Of a DNA stretch of 64,000 nt, positions 4,931 to 44,936 are shown piece after piece. The DNA lies in NCBI GenBank assembly GCA_004431415.1, contig QPMI01000249.1:25079-89078 (forward strand), given 5' to 3'. The notes under the pieces were generated by a model. That model did no database searches and had not been told where the DNA came from. It saw only the letters and a list, made by a program, of their open reading frames with translations. This stretch comes from Cyanophora paradoxa CCMP329 (Eukaryota > Plantae > Glaucophyta). Position 1 is the first letter of the stretch. Each line of letters begins with the position of its first letter. The position numbers and the translations under genes were made by a program.

Positions 4931-7900
4931 CTAGGGGCCCGCCAGGAGGTCTCTTCCTCCCCGGGGCCCGGCTGAGGGCTCGCTGTGGCGGGGCCCCCGG
5001 AGCGCCCCGAGCGGGCGGAGCGGCCCGAGGGGTTCGCGCCCCCGCCCTTGAGCTCCTCCAGCTCCGACCTCGCCTGCTCCATGATCTGCACAAGGCAAAG
5101 CGTCAGGCTTGAGCTTGACTGCGTCGAGCGGCGACGAGGACGCACGCGGACGGACTCGGTGGCGACGCGCTCGGCGACCTGCCGCTGCGTGGCCTCGTCC
5201 CTCAGGCGCTGCTCGAGGTGGAGGCGGTGCGCGGCCTCCTCGCGGAGGCGCTGCTCGAGGTCGAGGGCCCGCGCCTCCACCGACGTCCGCTCCAGCGCCG
5301 CCCCCTGCAGCCTGCGCCGCCTGAGCCAGCGAGGCCGAGCTCCCCACGCATCCCCGCGCACTGCTCCAGGAGCTGCTTGCGCTGCAGCTCCGTGCTCCGC
5401 GCCGCCATGTCCGCCCGCGCGTTCGCCTCCGCCACCCGCGCCAGCAGCTCGTCCCGCTCCGACCGCACGCCCCCGACCTGAACGCGGGGCGTCCGTCGCG
5501 CACGGCCCCCGGGCCCAGAGAGGCGCTGGGCGCACGCTCTGGGCGACGGCGGCGGCGCTCTCCTCGAGGGCGGAGCGGGCGCGGCGCTCGGCCTCCCACT
5601 GCTCGCGGGCCGCCGCCAGCGCCGCCTGCAGCTGCTCCGCCTGCTCCTGCGCCGCCGCCGCGCGCTTCGCCCCCGCGATGCGCTCCTGCGAGAGGCTCGC
5701 CTCCGCGACCCGCAGCGCCTCCTCCAGCCCCGCCGCCCGCTCCGCCGCCTCGCGCTGGGCGGCGCGCGCCTCCGCCAGCGCCCCCCGCTCCCCCTCCAGC
5801 TGCTCCCGCGCCGCGTACAGCTGCCGCCCCGCCCCGTCAGAGAAAGACAGAAAGAGAGGGAGGGGAGGAGGGGGGGGGGGGGGGAGGGGGGAGGGGGCGG
5901 AGCCGGCGCACGGCGGCGGACTCCTGCTCGGCGGCGGCGGCGGCGAGGTCGCGCTCGGCGGCGACGGCCTCGAGCTCGCGCTGCAGCTCCGCGCGCTCGC
6001 GCTGCAGCGCCCGCTCGCGCTCCTCGGCCTCGGCGAGCCGCTGCTGGCGCCGGCGACGCGCCCCTTCTCCCGCTCCGTCTGCGCCGCCACCTGCAGCGCC
6101 TCGCCCGCGCCGCCGCCAGCGCCGCCTCCCGCTCCGACGCCGCCTCCGCCAGCTGCTGCTCCAGCGCGCGGCACTGCGGCGAGGTTCAGGCGGGGGCGGG
6201 GCGCTCGGGCGGGCGCCCCGCGCGCCTTCTCCTCCCAGGCCGAGACGGCGGAGCGGAGGTCGTCCCGGGCCCGCCCCGCCTCCTCGAGCCGCCCCCGGCC
6301 CGCGCCAGCTCGCCCTCGAGCGCCTCGAGCTCGGCGAGGCGCTCGCGCAGCGCGGCCGCCTCGTCGGCGCGGCGCTGCGCGTCGGCGCGGGCGGCGCGCA
6401 GCTCGCCCCGCACGACGGCGACGGCGTCCTCGACGCGCTTGTCGGCCGTCTCCGCCGCCCGCCGCGCCCGCACCTCCATGCGCCGGCACGCCTCCAGCTG
6501 CCCGCGAGCTCGAGCGCCTCCCGCCGGGCCGCCTCGACCTGCCCCGCCGCCGCCTCCGCCCGCCGCGCCTCCGCGTACTTCTCCCGCTCCAGCGTCTCCA
6601 GGCGCCGCCGCAGCTGCCCCGCCGCCGCCTCGGCCTCCGCGGCGCGGGCCTCGGCCTCGGCGGCGCGCGCCTCGGCGGCCTCGCGGCGGGCCGCCTCCTC
6701 GGCCGCCTGCTCCCGCACGGTCGCCAGGTACCGGTTCTCCATCTCCCGCACCGCGAGCTGCCGGCCCCGTCGGGCGGCGTCGGGCAAGGCGGGGGGCACC
6801 AGGCACCAGCTCGCGCGTCTGCGCGTCCGAGGCCGTCGCCAGGCGCTCGATCACCGCCTGCTTCGCCATCGAGTCGTACCCCGCCTCCTGCCCGCCCCCG
6901 GCCCCCGCTCAGGCGCGGCGCGCGGGCGCACGGAGCGGGGCGCGGGCGCGCGCACCCGCTGCTGCCGCTCCAGCGCAGCCTCGAGGGAGCGCACCCGCGC
7001 CGCCAGCCTGCCGCACAGTGAGGGGCAAGGAGCGAAGAGGGAGGGACCCGCGAGCACCGGTTCTGGGCGCCCTTGACGAGAAGCACGCCGCCGTCGTAGG
7101 CGGCGCGCATCCGCCGCAGCGCCCCCGTCGCCGCCTGCACCACTGCACCCAGAGAGGAGCTGAGCAGAGGAGGAGAGGAAGAAGGGGAGGGGGGCGGGCC
7201 CTTGGTGAAGTCGGCGCCGAGGCGGGCCTTGAGGGTGTGCTCCGCGAGCTGCACGACGAGGCCCCAGGCGCGCAGCAGGGCCTCCAGGCGGGCGCCCTCG
7301 GGCCCCGAGGCCGCCCCCGCCCCCGCCCCGGGCTCGAGGACGCTGGTGAGGACGCCGTGGACGCCGGCGCCGTAGAGGTAGAGGGTCCGGTAGAGGCGGT
7401 CGGCCCCCGCGGCGGGCACGCCGATCGCCCGCAGTGCCTCGCGGGAGAGGCCCTCCCGCGCCAGCGACGTCCCCAGCGCCGAGGCGAGGGCCCCCTCCAG
7501 CCACGCCTCCACCCGCTCCCCCTCCTCCCGGCCCCCGCCCCCCCGCCCCGCCCCCTGCGGACCCACCGGCGGCAGCCCGTCCGCGCTGCGGTTGAGGCGC
7601 CCGGCCGGGGTGGCGGCCTCGATGTGGGGGGCGGAGGCGGAGGCGCGGAGGAGGGCGGGGGCGGCGGCGGGGCCCGAGGCGGGGCGGAGGTCGGGGAGGG
7701 AAGAGCGCAGGGAGCCGTGGAGAGAGCCGGGGACGGGGTACGCGGGGCCCGTGTCCTCGCCCTCCCCTTCCCAGCCCGCCTCGCCTTCGTCGGGGCCGGG
7801 GAAGGGCAGGGGCGAGGGAGCGCCGGGGCCGTGGGGGTGGGCGGGGCCGAGGGCGGGGCCTGGAGGGCGGCCACGGCGCCCTCGAGCTCGGCGACGGCGT

Positions 7901-15901: not shown

Positions 15902-16619
15902 TCATGATTGGGCACCGGTACCTTGGGCTCGCGGTCGGGGCGGGGACCAGTTCGGGGGCGTCCCTCCAGCCCAGGGGCCCGACAAATCGCGGAACCGGTC
16001 CGCGTTCAGCACCGACCTGCTCGGCGACGACTCGCGAGGCTCGAATGTGATTTGATTTCTTGTTCACGTTTGCGCATGGCAATATTCAATGCACCCGCAC
16101 TTCTCGACGCGTCCTCGTCCCCGGCCTTTCTGCGGATTCCATTTTCCCGCGCACAGCCTGCGCTTGTGAACAAGGATCTGCTCAGCGATCGCGAGGCATT
16201 TTACACGGCATGTAAGAGAAAGGGCATGAAATTAAACGTGGAAGCGCTCTCACCACTTCCCAGAATTAAAATCGTGGCTCAAATTCCCGCCGCATGAACA
16301 CCTCGGCGGAACGCCGAACTGCGGAAAAGATGCGATATCGACATGCATTCCGCGACTGGCGCGGGCGCGCTGCGCGTGCGCATGCGCACTGTGAGAGCGC
16401 TGGCGACCCTTTCTGCGAGCTCCTGCTTCGTCCCAGTTGTCTTCATTCCATTCTGTCTGCACTCGGAAGCTCGAGCTCGGCTGGCTGCGGAGAAACCGGT
16501 CCCGGCAAGCCGACACGCACGCACCTGAGCATCTCGCTGAGGTCCTTCGCGGATTTCTTCCCGGCCCACTCGCTCGCTTCCCGAAGCTTCGCGTCATCGG
16601 AGACGGCCCGCCCCGCCAT
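15902..16619 (-). CDS. Small standalone PADR1 (PARP1 Zn3)-like zinc-ribbon protein, about 5 exons
   Basis: Manual splicing gives MAGRAVSDDAKLREASEWAGKKSAKDLSEMLR|QNGMKTTGTKQELAERVASALT|FGVPPRCSCGGNLSHDFNSGKW|LCAGKWNPQKGRGRGRVEKCG..., resembling the PADR1 pattern (L..N.....G....L.RVA....FG....C..C.G.L......Y.C.G....W.KC). Confidence 0.6.
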
Positions 16620-16965
16620 GTAATATATATCCTCCAATTCTTCTCCTCGCGACCTCTCCTTCGCGCCTCGCACCGATTTCGCCTTTCGCTCCGATTTCGA
16701 ATTCGCGCCTCCCGCTCCGATTTCTCGCCTCGCTCTGCGGCCGATTTCGCGACTTGCAAAAATTGATTTGGAGAAGAAAAAGAGGAGAAAAGAGAAGGGG
16801 CGAGGAAGGGGATAGAAGAAGGGAAATTCGAAATGGATCGAGGAGAAGATTGAAGGAGAGAAAAATTCGAAGGATCCAGAGGCAGTGGTCTTCGCGATCG
16901 TGCTCCGCCCTTGACATGTACATGTGAGCAAAATTGCAAATTAAAACAATATCAATTGTTCAAGC

Positions 16966-17127
16966 CTCGAACCTATGTGAGCGTCAGCGTAGCATAGGGC
17001 AGTGTATGGCTGCCAAATAAAGGCAGCCTTGCTTACGCACATATGTACAAGGGGCGCACTTACAAGTTATAAGTGCGCCCCTGGGGTACAAGCCTCAGTC
17101 TTGCTTCGCAGCCAAGGCCTCTAAGCT
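16966..17127 (+). repeat. 162-nt structured leader, copy 1 (ends 6 nt before the gag ATG)
   Basis: Identical to 19015-19175 apart from one C in a homopolymer; contains several hairpins. Confidence 0.95.
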
Positions 17128-17133
17128 GAGGTC

Positions 17134-18221
17134 ATGGCTCGCTCGCGGAGGAGCCCATCGTGGGCCCCTCTGTTCGTAGTCGTCTTGACCATCATTCTGC
17201 TCGTCGCCTGTGCCGAGGCGGCGCAGAAACGCAAGTCAACGGCCACTGGTGCGCGCAAGTCGGCCAAACCCAAGACGGCGACGACCCCGCGCCCCAGGCC
17301 CGGAGGTCGTCATCTCGTCTTCAAGCTCCGGCCAACGACAGTGCGGAGGAGGAGCAGCCTGCACCTCCGCCGACGCGATCTCGCAAAGGCAAGGAGAAAG
17401 CCGTGTCGCCGGATCCGGACCAGCAGCAGTCCGACCCAGAAGATGAACCTGAGGACGACGTTGCCGTTAGACTGGCACAGCGTGAGCAGTTCGGTGGCGC
17501 CTACGACGAGGAAGAGCAAGTGGCTGCGCGCAACTTTCCGAACTTGGCGCAAGTGGATCCGGGCGCGGCTGGCCCGTCAACCGGCTTCACCCGTCACCTT
17601 CAAGGCCCTTATGCTGTACCCGCTGGCAACTCGACTGCCCCAACGTCGACCAAACCGGCAGCGGGTGCGCTTCCGCCAGCGTGGGCTGAGCTACTTCAGC
17701 GTGGGATAGATAGCGCGGTCATCAAGCTTCAAGAGCAGCAGCAGCAGCAGCTCGGCGAGCAGCAGAAAGACAACCATGAGGCTATGCAGCTCAAAAACCC
17801 GTGGCTTCGTGAGCTTGCCCTGCAGCTATCGCAGCTTAAGTTTCAGCTCAAGAGATGCTCTTCGTGCACTGCGTGCTACGATCACGTAAAGCAGAGCCTC
17901 AAAATCCTCGACGAGCTCCGGAAGCGGATCGACATTCGCGACAAGGGCGGCGACAAGCTTGCCGAGCGGCTGGCAGGTGTGCCAGAGGAGTATCGGGGCA
18001 CGGCTGCGGCGCTGGCGCACGCGCTCAACATTGCTGGCCCGGAGGCCGCCGGCGGGCGCCCGTATGTGCAGCACGCCAACCCGCGGCCCCAGCACCAGGG
18101 CCGCGATCGCCCGCCGTCGCAGCGCAACAGCGGGATGTGTTTCCGCTGCAACAAGCCCGGGCATGTCGTGAAGGATTGCCCGAACGAGCCGCGCCCCGGC
18201 TGGCGCGACCCCCCCAAGTAG
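17134..18221 (+). CDS. gag: Gag-like protein of the YR retroelement (one apparent frameshift at about 17285-17288)
   Basis: C-terminal CFRCNKPGHVVKDC (CX2CX4HX4C). The ATG-17134 frame joins the 17160 frame if one C is added to the CCCC run. Confidence 0.8.
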
Positions 18222-19014
18222 ACGTGCGCGCCCTTGTGTGGACGCGCAGTTTTCGTTTCGCATTTCGCTAGATACTAGTGTTTCGGTGTGTTCTTGCAAG
18301 CATAAGTATTGCTAGCATATGCAAGTGCAGTCTTCAGAAGATCTAGAGTGTGCGTGTATGCTTCCCTAAACATGCAATACATGTATTATGCTTCAAGGCT
18401 TCCATTTCATGTGATGGTGTGGCCGGGTGCGGCATTGTGGCCGGGTGCGGCATAGTCATTACCAGCCGTGGTGGCGCCGGCGTGCTGTGGCTTTATGCAT
18501 TGGTCCTGTGTGCATTTGCATGTGTTAACACTGTGAAGTGTGACTGTGAGTGTAGTCTACTTTTCTTTTCAATGCTAGTGGCATATATTGCCGTCTGGAT
18601 GACTCCAACCTGGCAGAGCCCCAGCTGACTCCCGGCAACTGACCTGTTTCCAGCACAGGTCAGGAGTGCTGCTGGCTGTCGAGCTCCTGGCCCCTCCGGC
18701 CTTCCCGTGTGTCGCTATCGCATACTGGGCGCTCTGAAATTAACCTAGTGCATTTTGCAGGTGAGGAGTACACAAGGGTACGAAGATTCCATGATGCCAA
18801 CTGTTCCCGCTGATATCGCAGGTTGGCGCATTCATCCAGAAAGTCCATGCCTGTGCAAATGTGTTGTGGCACTGTGGGTGCATTGTGGCACTGTGTGTGC
18901 ATGTGAGCTCAAGACTTGAACCAACAAGCACATTGACACGCTCACTCTTATATTCTTCATGACAAGACATGTTGTGCTTAGCTTGCTGTAAGCAAGGCTG
19001 CCGTGGCAGCCATA

Positions 19015-19175
19015 CTCGAACCTATGTGAGCGTCAGCGTAGCATAGGGCAGTGTATGGCTGCCAAATAAAGGCAGCCTTGCTTACGCACATATGTACAAG
19101 GGGCGCACTTACAAGTTATAAGTGCGCCCTGGGGTACAAGCCTCAGTCTTGCTTCGCAGCCAAGGCCTCTAAGCT
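19015..19175 (+). repeat. 161-nt structured leader, copy 2 (upstream of pol)
   Basis: Direct repeat of 16966-17127. Confidence 0.95.
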
Positions 19176-19243
19176 TCTTCCCGTTCGCGTGTCACCATCT
19201 TCAAGCCAGCGGCTGCATGGACCATCAGCTGTAGCAGTGCTAG

Positions 19244-21208
19244 ATGGGCACCGCGATAATTGGGCATGTCTGCCAATGCAAGGCCTCACCTCACTTTGCA
19301 GGAGGCTTTGTTGCATCCTGCATTCAAGCTGCAGTCCAACAGTGGAGAGCGATTGGAGCCAATGATGTCGTGCTCAACTGGATCTTGCGTGGTTTCCCTT
19401 TGTCAGGAGCGAGGCGGCTGCCAGCAGAGCGCCGGGCCAACCACAAGTCTGCGGCTGTGGACCATCAGGACTTTGTGAGAACCGAAATTCAGAAGCTTTT
19501 GCGCACGGGAGCGATCAGAGAAGTTGAAGAAGCTCAAGTGAACATTGTCTGCTCACTGTCTGTGGTGCCCAAGAAGACTGGATCCAAGTTGCGGCTCATC
19601 TGGGATGGCCGGCCTACCAATAAAGGCCTTCCGGACATCCCCTTCAAGTATGAGACTCTTGAGCATGTTGCAGCCATGCTGCGCCAAGGCTGGTACATGT
19701 TCACTATTGACCTTGAATCTGGATACCACCACGTGCCAGTCTCGCCGCAAGACTGGCGGAACATGGGCTTTGAGTTTGACAGCAAATTCTATGTGTACAC
19801 AGTTTTGCCCTTCGGCCTCAAGCACTCACCGTTTGCATTCGTCAAGATCATGCGACAAGTGGTCAACTACTTCCGCCGCTTTGGCATCTTCGTGGTGAAC
19901 TATGTTGACGACTGGTGGTTTGCTGCTCCAACCTACGAGAAGGCCTGTGAATTGCGGGATTTCGTCCTCAAAACATTTGCTGCCCTCAAGCTTGTGGTCA
20001 ACAGCAAATCTGAGCTCACCCCAGCACAGTCGGTGGCTTTCTTGGGCTTCATAGTGGACTCCGCCCGCATGTTGTTTGAAGTACCCCAAGACAAGCTTGG
20101 TCGTCTGCTTGCTTTGATCAAAGGGCTTCTGAAGAAAAAGAAATCAGCATCTGCACGTGAAATGGCCAAGGTCGCCGGCACCCTTGTGTCCATGGCACGG
20201 GGCTTGGCTCCAGCTCGCATCAAGACCAGGTCCCTCTTTCGATACATCAATGTTGTGGCAAGAGAATGGCATTGGAATCATCCAGTGGAGCTCACCAATG
20301 AGACTCGTCGGGAACTTGAGTGGTGGCTGGCCAACATCCACCGATACAATGGCCGCTGCCCTATTCGGCCTGAAAGGCTCCTTGTGTTGACTACGGATGC
20401 AAGCCATGTTGGTGCAGGAGCCTGGATCACTACCCGAATTGGTGATGCTCAACCTGTGGCTTGGGAGCTTGAGCCTGCCCCATTCCAGTGCCTGTGGAAC
20501 CAAGAAGAAGCTCAGCAAATTTCGTCGTGGCGCGAGTTAATGGCAGTGCTTCGCGCTATGCAGCACTATCAAGGTTTATTGCGCAATCAGAACATCTTAG
20601 TTCGCTCGGACAACACAGTGACTGTGGCCTACATCAACAATGGTGGCGGAAGACATGAATACCTTTGCCGAGTTGCAGCAGCAATTTGGGATATTGCTCT
20701 GCTCAATTGCATCAGCATTGAAGCAGAACACATTCCTGGTGTTGACAATGAGTGGTCCGATGCTTTGAGTCGCTACTTTTACCCCGCCGACTACTCGTTG
20801 AAACCTGGATATTTTGCCATGGTCAGTCGGACATTTGGACCTTTTGATATTGATCGTATGGCCTCATCAGCCAACACTCACCTAAATCGATACTTTTCCA
20901 TTGATTTGAATGATCGACATGCTGAAGGATATGATTGCTTTACAGCAACCTGGCGTGGTGCTCGTAATTACGTCTTTCCGGACCCAAATTTCCTCTTGCA
21001 CCTTGTGTCACATGTCCGCCAGTGTAGGGCCTCGGCAGTTTTTATTGTCCCTCAGTGGCCCTCAGCTCCATGGTGGCCACAGTTGCAGCTTGCCTTGCGT
21101 GCACCTGCAATGGTGCTCGGCCCAGCATATGACGTGTGCTATCGCGGGCCTCGCTCGGCACAGTTACCTTCCTGGATTCTTGTTGCTCTTTATGTGTCGT
21201 GGGAGTAG
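19244..21208 (+). CDS. pol: DIRS-type Pol: reverse transcriptase + RNase H + DNA N6-adenine methyltransferase-like domain (654 aa, intact)
   Basis: RT: IDLESGYHH, LPFGL, YVDD, FLGF. RH: TDAS, RELMAV, SDN, HIPGVDNEWSDALSR. MT: DIDRMAS..N, DCF...W, YVFPDP, VPQWPSAPWW. Confidence 0.95.
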   Translation: MGTAIIGHVCQCKASPHFAGGFVASCIQAAVQQWRAIGANDVVLNWILRGFPLSGARRLPAERRANHKSAAVDHQDFVRTEIQKLLRTGAIREVEEAQVNIVCSLSVVPKKTGSKLRLIWDGRPTNKGLPDIPFKYETLEHVAAMLRQGWYMFTIDLESGYHHVPVSPQDWRNMGFEFDSKFYVYTVLPFGLKHSPFAFVKIMRQVVNYFRRFGIFVVNYVDDWWFAAPTYEKACELRDFVLKTFAALKLVVNSKSELTPAQSVAFLGFIVDSARMLFEVPQDKLGRLLALIKGLLKKKKSASAREMAKVAGTLVSMARGLAPARIKTRSLFRYINVVAREWHWNHPVELTNETRRELEWWLANIHRYNGRCPIRPERLLVLTTDASHVGAGAWITTRIGDAQPVAWELEPAPFQCLWNQEEAQQISSWRELMAVLRAMQHYQGLLRNQNILVRSDNTVTVAYINNGGGRHEYLCRVAAAIWDIALLNCISIEAEHIPGVDNEWSDALSRYFYPADYSLKPGYFAMVSRTFGPFDIDRMASSANTHLNRYFSIDLNDRHAEGYDCFTATWRGARNYVFPDPNFLLHLVSHVRQCRASAVFIVPQWPSAPWWPQLQLALRAPAMVLGPAYDVCYRGPRSAQLPSWILVALYVSWE

Positions 21209-21773
21209 ATTGCAGGCTCTTGCTGCAGAATTCAACTCCTGCTCATCTCTGCTCAGCTTACTTTGTCCAGCAACAGGGATAGAAAGCTTGAGTGGGGGGC
21301 TTTAAAAAGAAGAAGAAGAAATGTAGTCTGACATACCCTTGACTCTGGTGATGCAGGTGCTCGTCTGGGGGTGAGCAAATGCAGTAGTAGGCAACATCCT
21401 CTGCCTTGTCTGATGTAGCAGAGCAGAGTGACACTGGTCAATTGCTGCGCTCGAGGACATCAGCTAGCGCACGCTGCAGAGTGAGTCTTGCGGACATAGA
21501 ATGATTGAACATTAGTGATCAATTGTTGATCAATTATTCATCAAAAGATATCAATGGTTGGCACTAACAATGGCTTAAAGATGACTGAAGGCATAGTAAA
21601 CAATGGGCATTGCTAACACACATTGAAAGCGGCTAAGCAAAGCCGCTCGAGCGGCTAGGGAACAAGCCGCTCAGCAAGTTACACAGCTTGCCCTCGCTTG
21701 TGAGCGAGGGAGACAAGCGCCGACAGCACAGCAAAGGCGCACAACTGCGAAGCAAGACTCTAAGACTAGACAA

Positions 21774-22773
21774 TCAACTACTGCGCCGAGTACGCGCGAC
21801 TTGCTGCCGACATGACTGCAGCGAAGCTGACGGGCCAGCGTAACGAGCACCAGGCCTAGCCATGAGCGCAGCCAAGGGCGGGCGCTCAGCAGAATCGATA
21901 TAGCGTCGGTAGACCGCTGACAACAAAGACCAGCGACCAACCGCTTGAACAAGCTCTTCAGGCACGCCCGCCGCAGCCAGAGCAGTAGCTCCACCGCGAC
22001 GCAAGCCATGAGGTGTGATACCAGTGGCGTCCAAGCCCGCCGCGTCAAATGCGAACCGGAGAACATAGGCCACGGTCTGAGCTGACAGAGAACGAGCTGC
22101 GTCCCGAAGCTGCCCAAAAAGAGGTGCGCCCGGATCCGCGAGCGCTACAGTCCGCAAGTAGGTTCGAAACCAGAACACCGGACAGATGACCGACTCTGGG
22201 ACAGCGCCCAAGACAACTTGCGCGCCTTGGCGACGACGATCGGTCTTGGAACCGGCAATGAAGAGCACGACGCGATCCGCGCGGATGGACACATCTTGCC
22301 GCCGGAGTGCCACGATTTCGCCACGCCGCAACAGGCCAAAGAAACCGGTAAGCAACATCACAAGGGCGCGAAGGAGCTTGTTTGAGGGGGAACGAGCGTA
22401 GGTACGAGCAATCGCCTCCAGGTGGACGGACGTGACCAATGCAGATTGCTTTGCTGGTTTTCCACAAAGTCGGGCGATTCCTTGCAATGTTTGCAGCACA
22501 AGGGGTGAGCAAATGCAGTAGTAGGCAACATCCTCTGCCTTGTCTGATGTAGCAGAGCAGAGTGACACTGGTCAATTGCTGAGAGACCGTACTCTTCATC
22601 AGCAAGAGCACCAGCAGTGTTGCGACGCCAGAAGCTGTTGGTGGCCAGGCTGGAATGCAGTGAACCGCGCAATGGCCTTCATAGAGGACGACCCAGCGGG
22701 CGTAGAGGCTTTGGGTTCGCTCGCTCACAGAGTTTGTTCTGTAGAAAGTGACCCGGTTGAGCAGATCAGCCAT
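21774..22773 (-). CDS. Tyrosine recombinase of the retroelement (two apparent frameshifts, near 22610 and 22502)
   Basis: Catalytic set LRRGE (R), SKTD (K), HGLRRGG (HxxR), GRW, YRRY (Y). The N-terminus is spread over three frames: MADLLNRV.../LADEEYGLSAIDQCHSALL.../PLVLQTLQGIAR. Confidence 0.9.
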
Positions 22774-22929
22774 ACGAGCACCTGCATCACCAGAGTCAAG
22801 GGTATGTCAGACTACATTTCTTCTTCTTCTTTTTAAAGCCCCCACTCAAGCTTTCTATCCCTGTTGCTGGACAAAGTAAGCTGAGCAGAGATGAGCAGGA
22901 GTTGAATTCTGCAGCAAGAGCCTGCAATC

Positions 22930-23798
22930 TACTCCCACGACACATAAAGAGCAACAAGAATCCAGGAAGGTAACTGTGCCGAGCGAGGCCCGCGATAGCA
23001 CACGTCATATGCTGGGCGAGCACCATTGCAGGTGCACGCAAGGCAAGCTGCAACTGTGGCCACCATGGAGCTGAGGGCCACTGAGGGACAATAAAAACTG
23101 CCGAGGCCCTACACTGGCGGACATGTGACACAAGGTGCAAGAGGAAATTTGGGTCCGGAAAGACGTAATTACGAGCACCACGCCAGGTTGCTGTAAAGCA
23201 ATCATATCCTTCAGCATGTCGATCATTCAAATCAATGGAAAAGTATCGATTTAGGTGAGTGTTGGCTGATGAGGCCATACGATCAATATCAAAAGGTCCA
23301 AATGTCCGACTGACCATGGCAAAATATCCAGGTTTCAACGAGTAGTCGGCGGGGTAAAAGTAGCGACTCAAAGCATCGGACCACTCATTGTCAACACCAG
23401 GAATGTGTTCTGCTTCAATGCTGATGCAATTGAGCAGAGCAATATCCCAAATTGCTGCTGCAACTCGGCAAAGGTATTCATGTCTTCCGCCACCATTGTT
23501 GATGTAGGCCACAGTCACTGTGTTGTCCGAGCGAACTAAGATGTTCTGATTGCGCAATAAACCTTGATAGTGCTGCATAGCGCGAAGCACTGCCATTAAC
23601 TCGCGCCACGACGAAATTTGCTGAGCTTCTTCTTGGTTCCACAGGCACTGGAATGGGGCAGGCTCAAGCTCCCAAGCCACAGGTTGAGCATCACCAATTC
23701 GGGTAGTGATCCAGGCTCCTGCACCAACATGGCTTGCATCCGTAGTCAACACAAGGAGCCTTTCAGGCCGAATAGGGCAGCGGCCATTGTATCGGTGG
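22930..23798 (-). pseudogene. 5'-truncated duplicate of pol (RH-MT part only)
   Basis: Same protein sequence as the C-terminal half of 19244-21208; RT missing. Confidence 0.85.
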
Positions 23799-25305
23799 CT
23801 TTCAGCGTGAAGGAGGTTCTGCAGAGTCTGTCGCGCGCGCTCTGTTTCTCGGAGTCTGTCATGCGCGCGCGGCGCGGCGCGGGGGCTAGCGCTGGGGATC
23901 TAGATCTAGAGCTCCCGATCAATGAGCCCCGGCCCGTCGTGCCCGCGCGCAGAGCCTGTGTGACGACAGCCTTGTCCAGTTCGACAATTGCAAGATCGGG
24001 ATCAGTAACTACTACTGGCGAGCTCGAGCTGCTGTTCAGTTTGAATCTAGATGAATTTTTAGAGCGTACTTAATTGTGTAATTGGAAATTGAGCGCCGCA
24101 AGTATATAACGTTAACGCCGCGATTTATCTCAGGGCGTTTCCGAGCACGTGCACGGCGGGCCAGCAGCGCGCCTCGCGGATCAAGCAGCTCCAGGACTGC
24201 GTCGTGGCTGCCGAGGAGCAGAAGAAAACGCTCTCGGACCAGAAGGAGAAATCGCAGCACGGGAAGGAGGACTTGGTGCGTCGGAGGTCTCACAGCTGCA
24301 GCCGTATTTATTTAATTAGCTGCCGCGGCTGCGCCACTTTAATTTCGTGTGAGATTTGTATTAGATCTAAACGGAATTTGACATTTAGGCGGACCGCGCG
24401 GCGCTGCTGGAGCAGCTGGGCGCTAGAGCGCGAGGACGACGCCCTCTCTTCAGAGCTCGCGATCGCCCGGTGATCATGAGTCTCGCAGTTGCAATTGCTC
24501 GCGCGCGGATCCCGGAGCGCCAACGCGTACGGTACCTGTGCATGCGCACTAGACTCAATCAATGATTGCAATTGACTTGAATTTTGAAAAAGAGAAGAGT
24601 TTGAGGGCGCATTGAATTCGCAGGAATTTAAATTAGACGCGCCCGCGGCCGCGTTCGTGCGCGCAGCTACCGCGACTGCGATCCAGAGGTGCGCGATCGC
24701 GGTTTACATGTTTCAAGTTTATAATTACCGTAGTACTTTGAGTTCTTGGATTAATGAACCTGGTGCAGAGACGCAGACGACTGTACATGTCGCAACGGAG
24801 GCTGCAAATCGGTGCACGGGTGCGCATGCTTAAGTAATAATTCTTGGCCGACGCCCATGTACACGCGCACGTGCACGCGAAATCCGTGCGCAAGCACGTG
24901 CACGTGCGCGTGCACGTGCGCGCTGACAACGTTCTAGATCTAGATCTTCCGGCGAAGAAGCACTGCGCGGCGAAGCACAACATGGAGGCAAAGAAATTCA
25001 TGATCAGCCGGGCTTTCGACGTCCCTGAGGCGCGCCCAGAGGATTTGAAATTTCGCGATCGGATTCTATACCTTGTAACATCGATGGCTGATTATGACGC
25101 GTAAAGCGAAAAGGCCCTTTTCTCCTTTTCAAAAGCGAGAAGGCCCTTTTTCTCCTTTTTCCTCCTCTTCAACGTTAACAGGGGCATGCGCAGCGCACTG
25201 CACTGCACTCCATGACAACTCCATTGATGATTGCGAATCCATGCAGACAAATAAAAATGCCTCGATCAGCTGCTGCTGTTTAACAGTTACTACCCCCAAT
25301 TGTTG

Positions 25306-28300
25306 TCACTGAAGCTGGATATTGAACTGAACTGTAAACAAATACTGCCTTCTGTTATCCGCCTTGTCTCCGAGATTGATTTCCTGTCGCAAATTGGAAA
25401 TTCATGATCATAAGCAGTGATCAGACCTTGTATTACAGGCGTACGTACCTTTAGCGCCCATGTACCACCCGGGCTTCCGGCGGGCAGCGCGTGCGTGATG
25501 GTGTAGAGTTTCCACGCCCCGGGGTCGCCGACGAAGAAGCGGGTGTAGTAGTTCTCGTGGTAATGGTACTCGAACACGTCCCCGCCCGTCGGACTTAGCA
25601 GGCGGTACGAAACAGAGCCGAGGCCTGACCCGCCGTGATCCCGGGCCCAGTACCGGATGGTAACGTAAGTGCCTCCATTCGGATTGGTCGGGTCCGTGGG
25701 GGCCGCCTGGAACAACATTCAATACACCATGTAAAATCTTGTGCATTTATGGACACGCATACCGATACGGTGACGTTCGTCGCGTTGAGCTCCGGCTGGA
25801 ACAAATCGGCGACCGGCGTCGTGATGTTGATGTTGTATTGCTTATCTGGAGTGCGATACATCTCCGCCGCAGTGGTTTCCTGGGCGATGTTTGTGACTGT
25901 GTAGTGTTCGATAAAGTACGTCCTGAAAAATAATATTAGAGAGACGTCGACCGGGATTTAGCATTGCAATTGCAAGCTAATGATCACCCGTTGCGCTGGT
26001 AAGGATTGATATCGAAATCGACTGTGCAGTTATACGCGAACGCCTCGGTCAGTTTTACGCAGTACTGCTTTCCAACCTGCGCATGCAAAGCAAGAAAGAA
26101 ATTTTATGTATTAGTTATAGACGCGGACAGGGTCTGTCGCGTGCGAGATTAGTGTGTCTAATCGTGCGCGCGAGAAGCCCGTGCGGAGTGCAAGCTCGGC
26201 AGGGCGGGGTTTGGCGAGTGCTGCTGCTGTTAGCCACCGTGATGGTAGACTGAGGGTGTACCCGTCCAACTACGGCGTACCCCGACACACGCATACAAAT
26301 GACCGCGGCGCTCTAACTAGCCTAGGCGCCGTCGGCCTAGCAGCACGAAGGCTGCATACATCATCTAGAGCCCTAGCGGCTCACAATCGAGCATCCACTG
26401 TAAAGTCGGATGCGACAACTCCTCCTCTCGGATCCCGCGTCCGCGCGGGTCTACGCCCGAAGGCGAACAGAGAGAGGGCCGGGGAAGCCAGGAATTTGAT
26501 CGAGCCTGAGCTCTCTATACAACGCGACCCCGGCCGCTATACACAAACGCTCGGAGCTACCGGCTACTGCCGGGAATCGAAAAAAGGCTCCGAGCCACTC
26601 ACGGTCGGCGTCACCGGCTACTGCCGGGAATCGAAAAGACGCCGAGCCCGTCTACGTCCGGCGACTGCCGGGAATCGAAAAAGGCTGTCGCCCGGCGGGT
26701 GCCGGTACGACTCCAGCGTGTAGTGCCCAGGGGGCAAGGTCCAACTTCGGGCCGGCGGCCCAGGCAAACCCGCACGAGGCGAGCGGTACGGAGACAGAAG
26801 CCGAGGGGGGCCCTGCCCTCATCGCGCAGCACGTTAGCCGCAAGAGCGCACGCTGCAACAGCAACGCGGGGCGTAGCGTCGCGATGGCACTCGATAGCCC
26901 ACAGCAATATGCCCGTCCCAGCGCTTAGGGATATGCAGCCCGTCGTGCGACGCTGCCTAGGCACAAGCCGCGCTCCCACAGCAATTGCACGGCATCGAAT
27001 CGGGGGACCCCGACGGCGGTGGAGCTAGGGATCTCCAGGGCGAGGCTAGGCGCCGCCCACAGGGCTCAAACCACCGTCACTCGTGACGGCAGGTGCCCTG
27101 CCCGACCCGTGCATGCACGTCCATTGCGAGGGGGACGTGACCCTCCCAGGCGAACTGCCACCGAGCGTCCCCGGTGCAGAGCCCTGAATGGGGGAATTTT
27201 TGCGTCCCCAGTCGTCGTACCCGGAGTGGGATCCGGCGTAACGACCGCCTGCGTGTACCCCCACCGGCGCAAGGCGCGCCCTGGTACACCGCCAGGTCTT
27301 ACACGGAGGGGAATGGACATCCCCTGTCGCTGTACCCGAGGCAGAACTCGGCGTCACAGCCGCCTACCGACCCTTCTGCAGACGCGAGGCGCGTCCTAGG
27401 GCTCGGCTAGGTCTTCGGAGGGCCCCAGCCCTGTCACCGTGCCGAGCTGTGCTCAAGGCCACCGGCCGCCCGCGGCTCATCCAATTTGCCCGGGTCTTTA
27501 CAAGGGACTCGCACCCTGTCACCGCGCCGAGCTGTGCTCAAGGCTGACGGCCGCCCGCAGCCTCTTCTCTCGGCTCGGGGCTTTCGCGTTGTGCGCGGGG
27601 CTCTGAGGCCCGTCGATCCAGCCCGCCTCGGGCGATCTCTTGCTCAGCGCTGCCAAGGGGCTAGCGCAGCCGCTCTCCTGTCCTCACCCTCTCGCGGGGT
27701 CGGGACGCAGCTCAGAGCCGGCTTCCTAGATCTCATGATCAAGCCGCTCCCGCCGGAGCCGTTGGCACCGTGGCCGTGGCTTCCGGCCCGGACCACCCGC
27801 CGCCTTAACCGCCTTGGGGCCAGGCCGGCCACATGCGAGACGGAACTCATGGGTGTCCTTCTGGCGCCGCCTCAACAGGCCGGCCACCGGGTCTCCAAGC
27901 TCCTAGCTTGTGAGCAGGGCTCGCGGCCCGCCGCACCGCTCGGCCTGCAGCCGCAGCGTGCCGCCTGGGTGCCAACTTGTCGGGCAGTTCACCAGGTTTT
28001 TGGGCTGGGCACCAGGCCCTTGCCCCGCTAACGTTCGGTCCGGGCCCCGGAACCAACACGTGCGGCCTGGGCGCCAACTTGGCGGGCATCACCAGGACTT
28101 TAAGTTCAAGATAGTGCAAAGCTCTCGATGGAGCTGCTGGTGCCTGAACGCCTAGGGGCGAGCCAGGACTTTATTTCAGGGCTCGAGCTCTCGAGGGCAC
28201 TGTGTGCTCATGATCAAGCTCGCCCTTCATTGGAGCTTGGAAGCTCACGATTTTCGCAGGGGCTCACGGGCCGCCTGTCAAGCTCACGGCATGCCGTCAG

Positions 28301-31300
28301 GCGCTCGCCGGCCGCGGGGCCGGGCATCGTGCCTCTGGCATCGAGCTTCTCTTGAGAGTGCATCCCGAGCTCAAGGCTCCGCGGATTACATCTCATTTTG
28401 CAACGGCAGCTATGCCGCTCTCAGGCCGAGGAGCTCACGATCAGAGCATTAGCTGCCGCGAGGGCCAGCTACAGCGAGGGCCAGCCCTGGCCGCAAGGCC
28501 TGAGGCCACTTTCCTGGATTTCGCAAGGCCCGTGGACGCACTCAGCGACTGCAGTGCGCCGCGCGAAATCGCAGGCTTTCGACGAGAGAGTCTTGGAGGG
28601 ACTCCTCCTCTCGGAAAGACTGGTACCCGCTTGGGGTTTGCGATCTGATCTCGGCCACTGGCCACAGATCTAGATTGAGGCAAGCAGGAGGGCTCGCAAT
28701 TGCGGCGCCGGCCGCGGGCCTCTTTGCAGGCTTCAGCGAAAGAGGTACTCCTCCTCTCGGAAAGAGGGGCACCCCGATTGGGGCCCTCTTTCGCAAGTGC
28801 TATTTGATCTCGGCCAGCGGCCACAGATCCAAGCAAGCCGTGGGGCAGGAGGGCAAGCGGCAGCAATTGCACTGCTCGTGCAGCATGCATATGCCCGTGC
28901 TCACTCCTCCTCTCGGAAGACGTCGTCCCCGACGTCTGAAATCATGTACAAGTGTACAAATATACAGCCTGCTCAGAGGCAGGTATATTGGCCGCTTATT
29001 ACAGCGACACATGGGACTCTCGCAGGGGAGGCCCAGGCTCCGCGAAAAATTGAATCGCGGTTACGAGCAGGGCTGTTCTGGCGGCTGCCCAAGCCAGCCA
29101 GACCCTAGTGCAGCTGGTGCACGTGCTCACTCACGCTCCGCCGCAGGGCGCGCGGTCGGAGCCGCTGAGCTTGAGGGCGCAGGAAGCGCGGGGCGAGCAG
29201 CCCGTGTGGGGGGGTCGGAGCAGGCACTGTGGTGGTGCCCTGCCTCGCCACAGCGACCGCAGACTTCGTCTGGGTCCTGTTTTCCCTCATCGGACCAGTA
29301 CTCTTGCTCGTCGGCAGCATCCTCTTGGGATTGCTTTGGCCGATAGTACTGGCCGCGGCGCACCCAGGGGCGTACTGGGGCGAACGGGGTGCGCTTGGGG
29401 CACACATTTGCCCAATGACGCCGCGCCTCAACGGGGACGCTAGGGTCATCTGAGCACCCATAGCAGTCTGAGGGGGGGTACTCGGGGTACCCGAGCTCAG
29501 ACATGCGGCGCAGCACCTCCGCGACGGCAGCAGGCGAGCGGGACTGCACGGCCCAAGAGGACCCACGTGCTGAGATCGAGGGCTGGGCCCTGGGGTCGGC
29601 GTCCCGAGGCGCAGCAGGGCCAAGGGAGCTCGAGGACTCATCCTCGGCAAACTTTGCCTGCAGGATACGGGTCCGTTTTGCCTCTGGCGGCTGAGCAGCT
29701 GCCGGTGCAGGCGGGAACACGGCACGGCAGCCGTGGCGCGTGCACTGCTCGATGAAAATATCATCAAGCTCGAGCGGCGAGACAGCGCCGTCACGGGCAA
29801 GGAGGCGCTGCTGCAGCGCAGCGAGGAACTCGCGCATCGTGCGCTCGTTCTCTTTCGCGAAGCCGGCCATCCGAACCTCAAGGTTCTGATATTCCGGGTC
29901 CTTGCTCGTCGAGCGGGCCTCGAGCGCGATGCGCAGGCAATCCGCATAGTACGCAGCGAGCCGCTGGCCCGGCGGCAGCGTGTGCCGCACAAGGGGCATG
30001 ACCCAGTCATGCCACGAGCGGGGGTCCTCGCCCGTGTAGGGCTCAGTGAGGGCCCGGCAGGCCGCATGCGGGCGCAGCTTGTGAATCCACGCCGTGATCG
30101 TATCGAGCAGCCCGGGGGCACGCAAGTACGAGTCACGCACGGCCACGATCGTGGCCTCATCACGCACGCAGCTCTGCTGCAGAGCGAGAATATTGGCATC
30201 ATCCTCGGCAGACCGCAGGTTTGCCGGGACAAGCTCGAGACGAGCGAGCGTGGCGCGGTCACGCTCTAGGAGAGCAACCGAGGCCTCATAGAGGTCACGC
30301 TTGCGCTCGATCTCAGCGCGGAGAGCGCCGGGGCGGATTCGCCCAACGATCACTCCGGCTAGTGCCTCCGACTTTGAGTACTCCTGGCCACCGGCAGAAT
30401 CCGGGCCAAACAAGTACTTCGTCGGCAGGGCCGACTGGAAGTTCCGCACATCCTTCCGGAACCGGTCGCCATCGGCGAGGCGCGGATTCGCAGGCAGGAA
30501 CGCGATCCGCACGGGATCATCGTCCGCCGCAGCGGAGGCAGCAAGTTGCTGCACATGCAAAGCAGCACCAGCCTGGGCATGCACAGGCTCGATGTGCGCG
30601 AGGGCAGACAGCCGGCTTCGGACTTCAGAACTGATCAGTTCAGAAGAGTTTGACATGGTGTTCTCTTTGCAACGTAAAGCCGCAAGAACAAGATGCCAGG
30701 GAGAGCACTAGGCGCGGGATTTGATCTGCAGCTCGCTGCAGAATCCGGCGCGGAGATCTCGCGGTCACGCAAGAGCGCGACTCAGGGACACTTAGAGAGC
30801 TGCTCGCAGCAGTCTCCGTGGCACGGTTGCTCGCAACCGGCGATGGGACAGGCAATGATGAGACTCTCGAGAGAGAGCTCGGCGCGTGCGCTTCGGTCTG
30901 GGGATGACCCGAAGCCCGCGATAGGCACTAGAGACGTTTCCGGTGCACTACCGTCCAACCGCAAGCGGTACAGGGCGGCGCACTCAAACGCAAAGCAACC
31001 GTGGGGACGGCGCTCGCGCGGAAAGCAGGTCTCTGGCTCCAATAGACACTGGGCAAGGCGGCGCAGCGATGCGCGCTGCGCGGCGGGGCTGGGGAGAGCG
31101 ATACGGACTCAGACCCTTGAAGGTTCGATTCCGGCAGAATGGCGCCTGTCGCGTGCGAGATTAGTGTGTCTAATCGTGCGCGCGAGAAGCCCGTGCGGAG
31201 TGCAAGCTCGGCAGGGCGGGGTTTGGCGAGTGCTGCTGCTGTTAGCCACCGTGATGGTAGACTGAGGGTGTACCCGTCCAACTACGGCGTACCCCGACAC

Positions 31301-34300
31301 ACGCATACAAATGACCGCGGCGCTCTAACTAGCCTAGGCGCCGTCGGCCTAGCAGCACGAAGGCTGCATACATCATCTAGAGCCCTAGCGGCTCACAATC
31401 GAGCATCCACTGTAAAGTCGGATGCGACAGGGTCGAAGCATGTAATTATAAGGAAATAGTCCTTTGACTCTGGATCGGGGTCCTAAAAAGGGGCAGCAGC
31501 TGCGGACCACCGCGTTGTCATTGATCAGGTTGCCATTCAGGACGTGCCGCAGCCTACTTCTGACGCTTTCGACAGCACTTCCGCTGAGGATCTTAAACGT
31601 CGCATACAGCCGCTGCGCAAACGGGCAGTCATGAACAAAGTCGACGCTCGCATTTTTCAATCTTTGATTTTGCACCTGGATTTCATACACGCGCCCGCTC
31701 TCCGTGACGTTGACCCGCTGGATGACATGGCTCGTTGTGTTGTCAAATATGATTGGGCTCCCGTCTTGCTTCTCGAGGTTGTTAACCCAGAATCTGCGAA
31801 CCGTGGCCAAAGTCAAACGCGGGTCGAGCATTTTCAAATATTCTCGAGCAATCCGAATGCGTCGCGGACCTCCAGCCCGCGTCCTCGCCCTCGAGCTCCC
31901 TCTTCACGCCGTCGGCCGCCACGACATAGAAGAAGTACCCCGTCTTCACGAACCTGCGCTGTTACGGTCGATTTCGACGCTCGAGCTCTTCCCCTGGCGC
32001 TACAGCAGCCACAGGCGCCGTAGTGGGAGGATCGCGCGCCAGAAGCCCCCGCGGACACGCTCGGTGATCTCCATCGTGCCCCGCAGCAGCCCCGGGGTTC
32101 CGGTTGGGCTGAGCCATTGGTCCATGAACGCGGCCTCTTTATCCGTCGGAATACCCCAGTAAGTCCTGCGCGCACACACGTATTCACAACTCTGAACTCG
32201 ACAGGGGAAGCGCACGCATGCGCAGGCTTGGATCCGGGGCGTACCGGAAGAAGGCGTTCTTTGGGGAGGGGAAGAGGGTCGGGTCAATGCGGAAGGTCCA
32301 CTCGAACGTCGCCACCTTCTTGCCCTCGGGGGGCCCTTCCACCTGGGCTGGACTGAGTACATGTTCGAACGAGGACTGCAGCACGGGACGGAACCTTGAT
32401 GTCGACGCCGATGAGCTTGCCCGGGTACGAGGTGTCCGGGTCCAGGTTCAGGACCTGCGCATGCCGCGCTGTCGTACCCCCGAAGCGGGGGCCGGGGCGC
32501 GAAGGGGAATCCGGAGCCTCGGAGGCGCATGCGCAGGGTCGCGGCACCTGGAAGGTGAGGCCGGCGTTGGCGCCCTGCGGGTACCGGTTCCCATGCATCA
32601 CCTGCGGGCGGGGCGGCCAATTCGCATCAGAGTCGTGTATGTGTGTGTGTGGGGGGGGGGGGGGGGGGGGCGAGTGACATCGATCGCGACGTTGACCCCT
32701 GGCCAATATATAATTTTATAAGATTTAGGGTCCGAGCCCTTCGGGTCCGAGCTCGAGCTCGATGGCGAGGATCCGGAGCGGAGATGGAGAGAGCGGGAGT
32801 CTGCAGCTGGCCGCAGAGAACATGATTGTGACGTCGACCCCTGGCAATAATTATATACGATCTAAAAGTCCCAGCCCTTCAATTTCAACTGTCCCCCGAG
32901 CTCGATTGTGAGGCGTGGGACCGCACCCGGCGGGTGACGAACTCGGCGCGCTCGGCGCCGCGCGCGAGCTCGAGGAGCCGCCCGGGGGCCGTCACGTACT
33001 CCGCCAGCGCCAGGCACAGGCTGCGCCGGCGTCAAGCTCAAGCTTCGACTTCCGAGTTCTGTGAAGACTGTGTGAAGCTTAAGGCGCACTCTTCCTCGGG
33101 GGAGGCGGCGGCCGTGCCGTTCGCGACGCCGTGCGGCCACCAGAAGCGGCTCACATTCCCCTGCGCGGCGTCGGCACCCGTGCGGGCGGGGCGGCCGCGG
33201 GCGCGGCCCATCTGGAGGAGTCTGAATTGCTCGCACCGGCTTAGAGGTGGCCCAGGCGCTGGGCCCGCCCGTCCAGCCGCCGAGCGCCGCCCAGTCGCTC
33301 TTGAGGCCTTCCGAGAACAGGCGCGCCCTGCAATTGCAGAGGCGCGCGAGTCAAGATGCGTAAATTGAGAATAAATGCATAAATGAACGCGCGCGCGCGG
33401 ACCACATGAAGCGGGCGCTCTCGAAGAGGAGCGCCTCGTGGGCGCCCGGCGGGGCGAGCGCCGCGGGGTCGGCGCTCCCGTTCCGCGCCCCGTCAGAGAG
33501 CCGCTCGAAGGCCGCGCTGCAGGCGGGCTCAGATGCGCAGGCGCACACGATGGAGAGGGATTGAGGCTTTGAGGGGCCGGGGCGCCAGCCAAAAATAGGC
33601 ACAGGCCATGAGGTTAAAGGCGCATATGCATGCGATTATCCAATTCGAATCTTGAGGTCTTCATAAAAAAAGGCGCATTCAATGATGCGATGGCGGCACG
33701 TGCACGATCAACTTGCTGCGTGCAGTGTGAGGACCCGGGATGATTCGGGGAATCACTAGCCCCTCGCGAGATGGCCTGTTGGTAGAACTGCCGCCTTGAC
33801 ACCCCCTTAGTCGTTGGTTCGACTTCGGCTGGGTCCGGGTCGCAACGCGTCCATAACAAACTCACATCTAAATTTTAGCGGAGCCTAAAGTACGGGTCGG
33901 GCTGGGCGACCGCGATCGCGAGGGCGGCACCTGGAGAGCTCGATGTAGGAGTCGGCGGCCGCGGCCGGCCAGGCGCGGGCGAGGCGCCCCGACGAGGGCG
34001 GCGAGGCGCGCGCCAGGATGTACTTCATGCCCGGGGGCGCGTGGAAGCCCTGCCGCCCGCTCAGTTCAGCCTCAAAGTTCTAGATATATAGATTATGGCC
34101 CAGTGTTTCGGTCTAGGGGCAATGCGATGAAGCGCCATGATCTAGATCTAGAGTCGAGGGCGATGCGGGCGCATTTTGACTTGCAGTTGCATCGAATGTT
34201 GACGTTCCGGGGGTACCGGTGGAGATCTAGAGGCCCAGGGGGCCGGGGCCGGGGCGCACGAGGGGCATGTCCTCGAGGAGGGTGAGGAGGAGCAGCAGCT

Positions 34301-42931: not shown

Positions 42932-44936
42932 CTACATCGAAGCGCTTCGACCGCGCTTCTCGAGCTCAGGCAGCCGCCCGGCCGGCGGCTGAGCGGAGGC
43001 TACGCCCTCCAGACATGCACTGAGCCGCCCAGGTCCCCAGCCGCCAGCGTGCTCCCTGAACGCGGCGCGGTGCGGCGTCAACGCGCGGCGCTCGGCGTCG
43101 GCGGGCCAATCGAGAGCGTGAGGGGGAGGCGGCCGTGGGCGCATGCGCACCGTCGGCGGAGATGGCGACGCACGTGACGGGCTCCGGCAAGTCCCCGATC
43201 GAACGGAAGACGTTCCCCTCCGCCTGTCCCCCGCTCAGAAGGCGGGCCGGGGCGAGGCGGGGCGGGGCGGGGCGGGGCGGGGCGCACGCCGCGGGGCTCG
43301 GGCCCGCCGCGGGCGCGCCAGAAGGCGAGGGAGTGGCGCTTGCCGAGCGGGTCGCTGCCGGCGCAGAGGACGAGGCGGGCGGCGAAGGCGAAGCGGGGCC
43401 GGCAGCGCTGGGCGAGGCAGAGGCCCTCGAGGGACTCGAGCCCGCGCCGCGAGGCGAGCTCCCACAGCTTGACCGTCCCGTCCTCGCTCCCCGTCATCAC
43501 CACGGGGCCCCCGGGCCCCCCCGCGCCCGCCGCCACGCTGTACACCCGCACCTCCTTCCGCCGCCGCTTGCCCCCGGGCCCGCGCTCCTGCACCTGCGCC
43601 CGCCCTCAGCGCGCGGCCTCTCTTCGCCACAGGGCGCGTGCCGCCGCGCGCCTCGCTAAGGTGGCCGGCGAAGGGCCGGCGGTAGGCCTTGAGGGCCTTG
43701 TCGAAGACGGGGGCCGTGGAGACGGCCGCGCACTCGAGCCGCGCCGCCGGCTCCCGCAGCTCGTCCTGCGGGCCGGTGAGGCGGGCCGAGCGGCGGAGCG
43801 GGGGCGGGGAGGACCTCGGGGGGCCCGAGGGCGGCGGACCAGCCCCAGGACTCGAAGGAGGCGGCTGTCGAGGCGGCGCCGCTCGACGCGCTCTCTCCGC
43901 CGCTGCTCCGCCGCTCCTGCCGCGGGCTCTCCCCCGCCGCCTTCGCCTGCCCGCGGCCCTCTGCGTGCCTCGGCGTGCACGGGCCCTCCTCGGGGGGCGC
44001 CGCGGTCGCGCTCCCCGGCGGGGAGGGCGCCGGCTGGTTCAAATCCTCGTCCGCCGCGTCCCAAATCGTCCGCGTGCGCTCTGCGACCCAGATGAGACGA
44101 GCGGCGGGGTCGAAAAGAGGGGCGCGCGCACCGGCCTCGGCGCGCGCGTTCAGGACGGTGAGGCGTTCGGCCGCCTTCCTCAGGTCCCACACGTAGGCCC
44201 CGAGGGGCGAGTCGGTGACGAGCGTGTGGAGACCCTCGCCCGGGACGAACGTCGCAGTCGTCGCCCGCGGCGCCTGCTGGATGCGGAAGACCGGGTTTCT
44301 GCAGGAGCGATGCCACACCGCGACGCTCCCATCCATGGCCGCCGTCGCCGCGACGTCGCCGGTGCCGTCCAAGCAGCATCCTGTCACGTATGAGGTGTGG
44401 TGGTCGAATCTGTTGGACCTTTAAGATGCGCCGTTGGGAAAGGATGCGCCGCGACGCGCCTGCGAACGGCGGTCGGCTCGCAGGCGCGTCGCACGTCGTG
44501 CAGCCGAACAGAGCAGTCGTCTCCGCAAGATAGAAGGGAGTCGCCCACCGCATCAAGGCTGCGCAGAGGCTAGGGCGTCAGAGCCGGCTAGGCCACGCGG
44601 CGAAGTAGTGCATCACCAGTTGATCGCGGATTGATGCGCGTGCGCAGAGACGATGTTGCTGATTGTCGTCCCTGATATTCGCCAGAGTTTGATAGCTCCG
44701 TCCGCATCCGCCGTTGCGAGAACATCTGAGATCAAATTTTACGCGTTTGAATCGCTTCGCTCAGCGAGAGGCGCAGGCCACCCACCATACGGATCAAGCA
44801 TCTTCGCGTCGTATACGGCGGCGAGATGCGAGTGCGGCGTGCCCGGAGTGACCGAGAGCCGAGCGGCCCGGACGAGCCGCTCCAGAATGAGCGCCTCGGC
44901 CGCCGCGCGTCCGCGGAAGCGCGTCGGCAGGTCCAT
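42932..44936 (-). CDS. WD40-repeat protein, multi-exon
   Basis: VAATAAMDGSVAVWH, AYVWDLR, MTGSEDGTVKLWE, PVTCVAISADG; 3' end approximate; head-to-head with UBA2. Confidence 0.7.

Follow-up and report, generated by a model that had tools for sequence, protein, structure and literature searches.

The window analysed here, a 64,000-nucleotide stretch of the genome of the glaucophyte Cyanophora paradoxa, holds an LTR retrotransposon at 26135–31429 on the minus strand. Its two long terminal repeats, each of 283 bp with TG..CA ends, are 100% identical (3′ LTR, 26135–26417; 5′ LTR, 31147–31429). The same five bases, GGGTC, flank both repeats as a target-site duplication (TSD; 26130–26134 and 31430–31434). 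A primer-binding site (PBS) adjoins the 5′ LTR at 31122–31146 on the minus strand; its plus-strand complement reads as the last 25 bases of a tRNA-like 3′ end lacking A76. Within it, a core of 16 bases (31131–31146) has stayed the same in a sister family that has otherwise diverged in leader and LTR. A polypurine tract (PPT), GAGAGGAGGAGT in the minus-strand reading, lies immediately upstream of the 3′ LTR (26418–26429). Three exact sense-strand copies of the 15-mer TTCGATTCCCGGCAG are found close by (26567–26581, 26621–26635 and 26665–26679, minus strand). Direct LTRs, a TSD, a PBS at the 5′ LTR, a PPT at the 3′ LTR and a zinc-knuckle gag are the features that identify LTR retrotransposons, and all are present.

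The gag ORF encodes 509 amino acids (29127–30656, minus strand) and has relatives of 73–98% identity. A CCHC zinc knuckle of the form CX2CX4HX4C occupies Gag residues 466–479 (29220–29261, minus strand). The protein matches no Pfam family, even at an E-value of 10. Its relatives, ranging from 36 to 98% identity, were found in EukProt only, under names such as tig00000405_g472, and three of them (P0006–P0008) are matched by the Pfam family zf-CCHC. Contigs are numbered in the same style in an expression study of Cyanophora paradoxa (10.1101/674762). Exact-protein look-ups of Gag and of a second protein, P0002, returned no record. Downstream of gag, the 4.7-kb interior contains neither a long ORF nor a Pfam match that would represent pol (reverse transcriptase (RT), RNase H or integrase), and the element is therefore non-autonomous. 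Contigs from four public runs of the same organism (three of DNA, one possibly of RNA) were compared over 30900–31500. Contig depth across the leader and PBS is about 21–25 times that of unique flanking sequence, corresponding to some 20–25 copies, with zero differing letters; the family is therefore multi-copy and young. The locus is thus a young, multi-copy, gag-only LTR retrotransposon of non-autonomous type. In the possible RNA run, contig depths over the LTR (31147–31429) are 230–900 on the U3 side (31317–31429) and 27 over 31147–31303. This can be read as no more than a hint of transcription of the family, as the RNA nature of the run is itself a guess and contig depth is no measure of RNA level.

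Another retroelement lies at 16966–23798, with an RT/RNase H ORF (19244–21208) and a CCHC Gag-like ORF (17160–18221). Its long inverted arms (20338–21122 and 23014–23798) are 100% complementary and suggest a DIRS-like element. The region that holds retroelements, 16000–26000, has a G+C content of 52–58%, compared with 65–81% in the rest of the window, which is rich in GGGGC/CCCCG runs and long G tracts. At 53409–53514 on the minus strand lies a complete U6 snRNA gene (96 bits, E 1.4e-23).

The tRNA-like block that forms the PBS complement was the subject of an earlier note, which described it as a tRNA 3′ end with the geometry of selenocysteine tRNA (tRNA-Sec). The descriptive part of that account holds. 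On the plus strand, 31122–31146 reads GG, TTCGATT, CCGGCAGAATGGCG and CC, and counting bases gives 14 nt between the T-loop-like TTCGATT and the CC in this copy. The caveat attached to it, that the terminal A of the tRNA lacks a partner, is likewise borne out: the last LTR base on the element strand, at 31147, is A. The PBS begins directly after the LTR's CA; A76 is therefore unpaired, and priming must start at C75. By position and orientation beside the 283-bp LTR, the block is a genuine PBS. A 23-mer drawn from it occurs once in the window and had 0 matches in 100 shuffles with three mismatches allowed. A degenerate T-arm motif has two sites in the 64 kb against 0.19 expected; the second, at 44036, was examined and is not a tRNA. 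The G at 31144 takes the place of discriminator G73, a base found in several canonical tRNAs too. An oligonucleotide for a canonical plant tRNA-Tyr contains bases 1–16 of the block (PMC7544208), so the T-arm part of the block is not specific to tRNA-Sec.

In tRNA-Sec, acceptor and T-stem together form a 13-bp domain, which places 14 bases between T-loop and CCA, against 13 in canonical tRNAs; a UCA anticodon, a long variable arm and a 6-bp D-stem are its other marks. The proposed geometry was examined by running cmscan on 31122–31170, the stretch being cut at the first base of the block. Among members of the tRNA clan, the tRNA-Sec model RF01852 ranks best, ahead of the general tRNA model. It aligns at model positions 70–91 of 91 with zero indels, scoring 11.3 bits (E 3.6), far under the gathering score of 47 bits and from a fragment of 22 bases only. 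The register comprises two bases of the 5′ T-stem strand, a T-loop of seven bases, four bases of the 3′ T-stem strand, nine of the acceptor, G73 and CC, followed by the LTR. The block thus resembles eukaryotic tRNA-Sec in fitting, with no indel, a 4-bp T-stem and a 9-bp acceptor that G73 follows, and differs in being a fragment: the parts specific to tRNA-Sec (anticodon, long variable arm and D-arm) are absent from it.

Variation within the family bears directly on this geometry. Spacing of 14 bases is the majority state and occurs in two leader lineages, that of the window copy and that of a variant (form f) in which a different leader adjoins the same LTR end, with identity to the window from 31112 onward. 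It does not extend to the other two forms. In the sister family (form b), the LTR diverges after 31169 and 31131–31146 is kept exactly, yet CCC replaces the window's CC, which brings the spacing to 15; there are also four substitutions in the T-loop-like part just upstream of the core. This form is present in the possible RNA run as well. Form c reads ATTCCCGGCAG, then TGGCGCC, then the LTR; it has CCC and lacks AA. Its spacing is thus 13, as in canonical tRNAs; the window copy shows that value only if one surplus base is assumed. Two independent runs show form c attached to this LTR end, and its only differences from the window form are one C and AA. The two are too alike to stem from unrelated tRNAs, so that no more than one can be an exact image of a real tRNA. 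Across the family, conservation is limited to the 16-base core, and PBS spacing is labile (13, 14 or 15). Since single bases come and go in the PBS flank within one family, a primer cannot be identified by spacing alone.

A tRNA with the corresponding 3′ end was sought in several collections. In the 64-kb window, neither ARAGORN nor Rfam at gathering thresholds reports a tRNA, the sole Rfam match being U6. A metagenome scan with a T-stem-constrained pattern gave 0 matches; with a 21-mer it gave one, at 7860–7880 of contig L001, where there is no tRNA and no Rfam match and the surroundings read as coding sequence. A GTDB scan with a 23-mer likewise gave one match, at 2753–2775 of L002, from a Sphingobacteriales MAG; its sequence context is that of L001, reads as a bacterial ORF and contains no tRNA. 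The identity of both contigs to the PBS complement is a chance match, of a kind that does occur for exact 21- to 23-mers in very large collections. Viral scans with the 23-mer and with its canonical-register version gave 0 matches, and neither of the PBS forms nor a Cyanophora tRNA-Sec sequence was found in the papers and supplements searched.

The anatomy of the element, the sequence of the block and its variation in the family are observed directly, and the identity of the priming tRNA is inferred. The primer is probably (at roughly 0.55) an ordinary G73 tRNA, with one surplus T in the PBS at the border of positions 58 and 59. With positions numbered as in canonical tRNAs, pairing of the window form is perfect over C75–U59. 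These 17 bases comprise CC and G73, the acceptor strand GAATGGC, the T-stem strand CGGCA, and then C60 and U59. The following course of priming can be proposed. (i) A host tRNA ending GGCG-CC(A) would anneal to the PBS; it would be a canonical G73 tRNA ending CGGCAGAATGGCG, with a T-loop ending in TC. (ii) Minus-strand cDNA would be primed from C75, and copying would begin with the A of the CA that ends the LTR. (iii) The 17 paired bases would represent the classical PBS length minus A76. (iv) The surplus T at the 58/59 border and the TTCGA-like, T-loop-like bases beyond it would be dispensable for priming. On this view, a one-base indel in a rapidly changing flank would account for the 14-base spacing; form b would be a perfect 16-base PBS, and form c would have decayed. 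A canonical tRNA plus a single inserted base is the case that the earlier note named as contradicting its tRNA-Sec proposal. Conservation of the core alone among the forms, with labile spacing, argues for this reading, as do the T-arm part shared with tRNA-Tyr and the predicted annealing of a canonical form-c tRNA to the window PBS. A study of Ty1 reportedly weakens the argument that the PBS of an active element must copy its primer; if that case applies, an imperfect PBS could persist in the Cyanophora element. Against it stand the flawless 25-base match in the Sec register, which needs no indel and is simpler, the lead of RF01852 over the general tRNA model within the clan, and the status of the 14-base form as the majority in two leader lineages. 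A canonical reading with no indel at all (T-stem CCGGC, acceptor AGAATGG, C73) was rejected: the next bases would be GCC, not CCA.

Priming by tRNA-Sec is possible, yet an ordinary tRNA is the likelier primer. The proposal, made because of the 14-base spacing as its one basis, would have the host tRNA-Sec serve a glaucophyte LTR family and its gag-only derivative through a PBS of 25 bases. CCGG would be the strand of a 4-bp T-stem and CAGAATGGC that of a 9-bp acceptor, followed by G73 and CC, a perfect complement throughout; the 13- and 15-base forms would be decayed or mis-primed copies. Several observations agree with this account, which we nevertheless consider unlikely: the spacing in the window copy, the indel-free alignment at the very end of RF01852, the dominance of the 14-base form together with retention of the core in the diverged sister family, and the G73 and GGC acceptor end of the block, both of which known tRNA-Sec carry. 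Most of the Sec machinery has been reported from Cyanophora, SBP2 not having been found, and glaucophytes are reported to keep tRNA-Sec (PMC6627142, PMC3531208, PMC13578239), which is also in favour. The score of 11.3 bits (E 3.6), however, comes from 22 bases that include no Sec-specific part, and form c, differing by one C and AA, is too near the window form for two unrelated tRNAs. The literature search gave no paper tying tRNA-Sec to a PBS, and the molecule is rare and usually single-copy (PMC13578239), which also weighs against it.

If form c instead mirrors the primer, this would be a canonical tRNA with the T-stem strand CCCGG, the acceptor strand CAGTGGC and G73, ending CCCGGCAGTGGCG; it may resemble plant tRNA-Asp. 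The window PBS would be derived, with a 2-base bulge (AA) and one C lost, and seven terminal pairs plus further pairing would prime. Consistent with this are the presence of form c beside this LTR end in two runs independent of each other and the three internal repeats, which have the same CCC and the same GGCAG-T junction. The predicted duplex of such a tRNA with the window PBS has a free energy of −28.6 kcal/mol, compared with −38.7 for a perfect partner, so the tRNA could still anneal. This primer is nonetheless quite improbable, in that the perfect form would be rare and the bulged form dominant, AA would have to persist in two diverged families, and just seven contiguous terminal pairs would be left. 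A tRNA-like host RNA of another kind with the exact 3′ end, such as the transcript of a variant tRNA gene or of a tRNA-derived repeat, would account at once for the perfect match and for the likeness to a canonical tRNA. None was observed, and we know of no precedent for priming by such an RNA; both points count against it, and we regard it as highly improbable. Among these candidates, the ordinary G73 tRNA with a surplus T in its binding site is the preferred primer.

The internal 15-mer repeats occur three times against 0.23 expected, each within a local hairpin near the 3′ LTR. They are of tRNA sense and are complementary to the PBS region save for one extra C, having the CCC of the sister PBS forms, not the CC of the window. 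Duplexes between the repeats and the PBS leader are predicted at −30 to −34 kcal/mol. The repeats might circularize the RNA or mask the PBS. Self-priming by the repeats was considered and discarded, as they leave the seven PBS bases nearest the LTR unpaired.

As it stands, the locus shows a non-autonomous element of recent activity, with a well-formed PBS, from a poorly studied algal lineage. Were tRNA-Sec the primer, no earlier case of its use would be on record, as far as the literature search showed. A low-abundance tRNA of odd shape would join the known primer repertoire, and transposition could be coupled to selenium-pathway status.

Several retroelements offer points of comparison. The barley element BARE-2 is likewise gag-only and non-autonomous, with intact LTRs, PBS, PPT and gag and without pol. 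Being multi-copy and young, the Cyanophora element is presumably mobilized by a partner. It differs from BARE-2 in that no autonomous partner is seen in the window and its Gag falls in no Pfam family. PBSs that start with (T)GGCGCC are used by HIV-1 with tRNA-Lys3 and by the plant element Athila with tRNA-Asp. Both resemble the Cyanophora PBS in lying right after U5, in complementarity to the G73-bearing tRNA 3′ end GGCG-CCA and in the length of the conserved core (16–17 bases). The Cyanophora PBS differs from theirs in having no T opposite A76, starting directly after the LTR's CA, and its tRNA-like match extends through the T-loop to 25 bases, with a spacing of 14. Ty3 and Ty1 have an extended or bipartite PBS (PMC5371799). 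As in those systems, the element RNA would contact both the T arm and the acceptor end of the primer, and regions close to the genomic 3′ end would be involved. In contrast to Ty3 and Ty1, the T-arm complement of the Cyanophora element is contiguous with the PBS, and its 3′ repeats, being of tRNA sense, would pair with the PBS and not with the tRNA.
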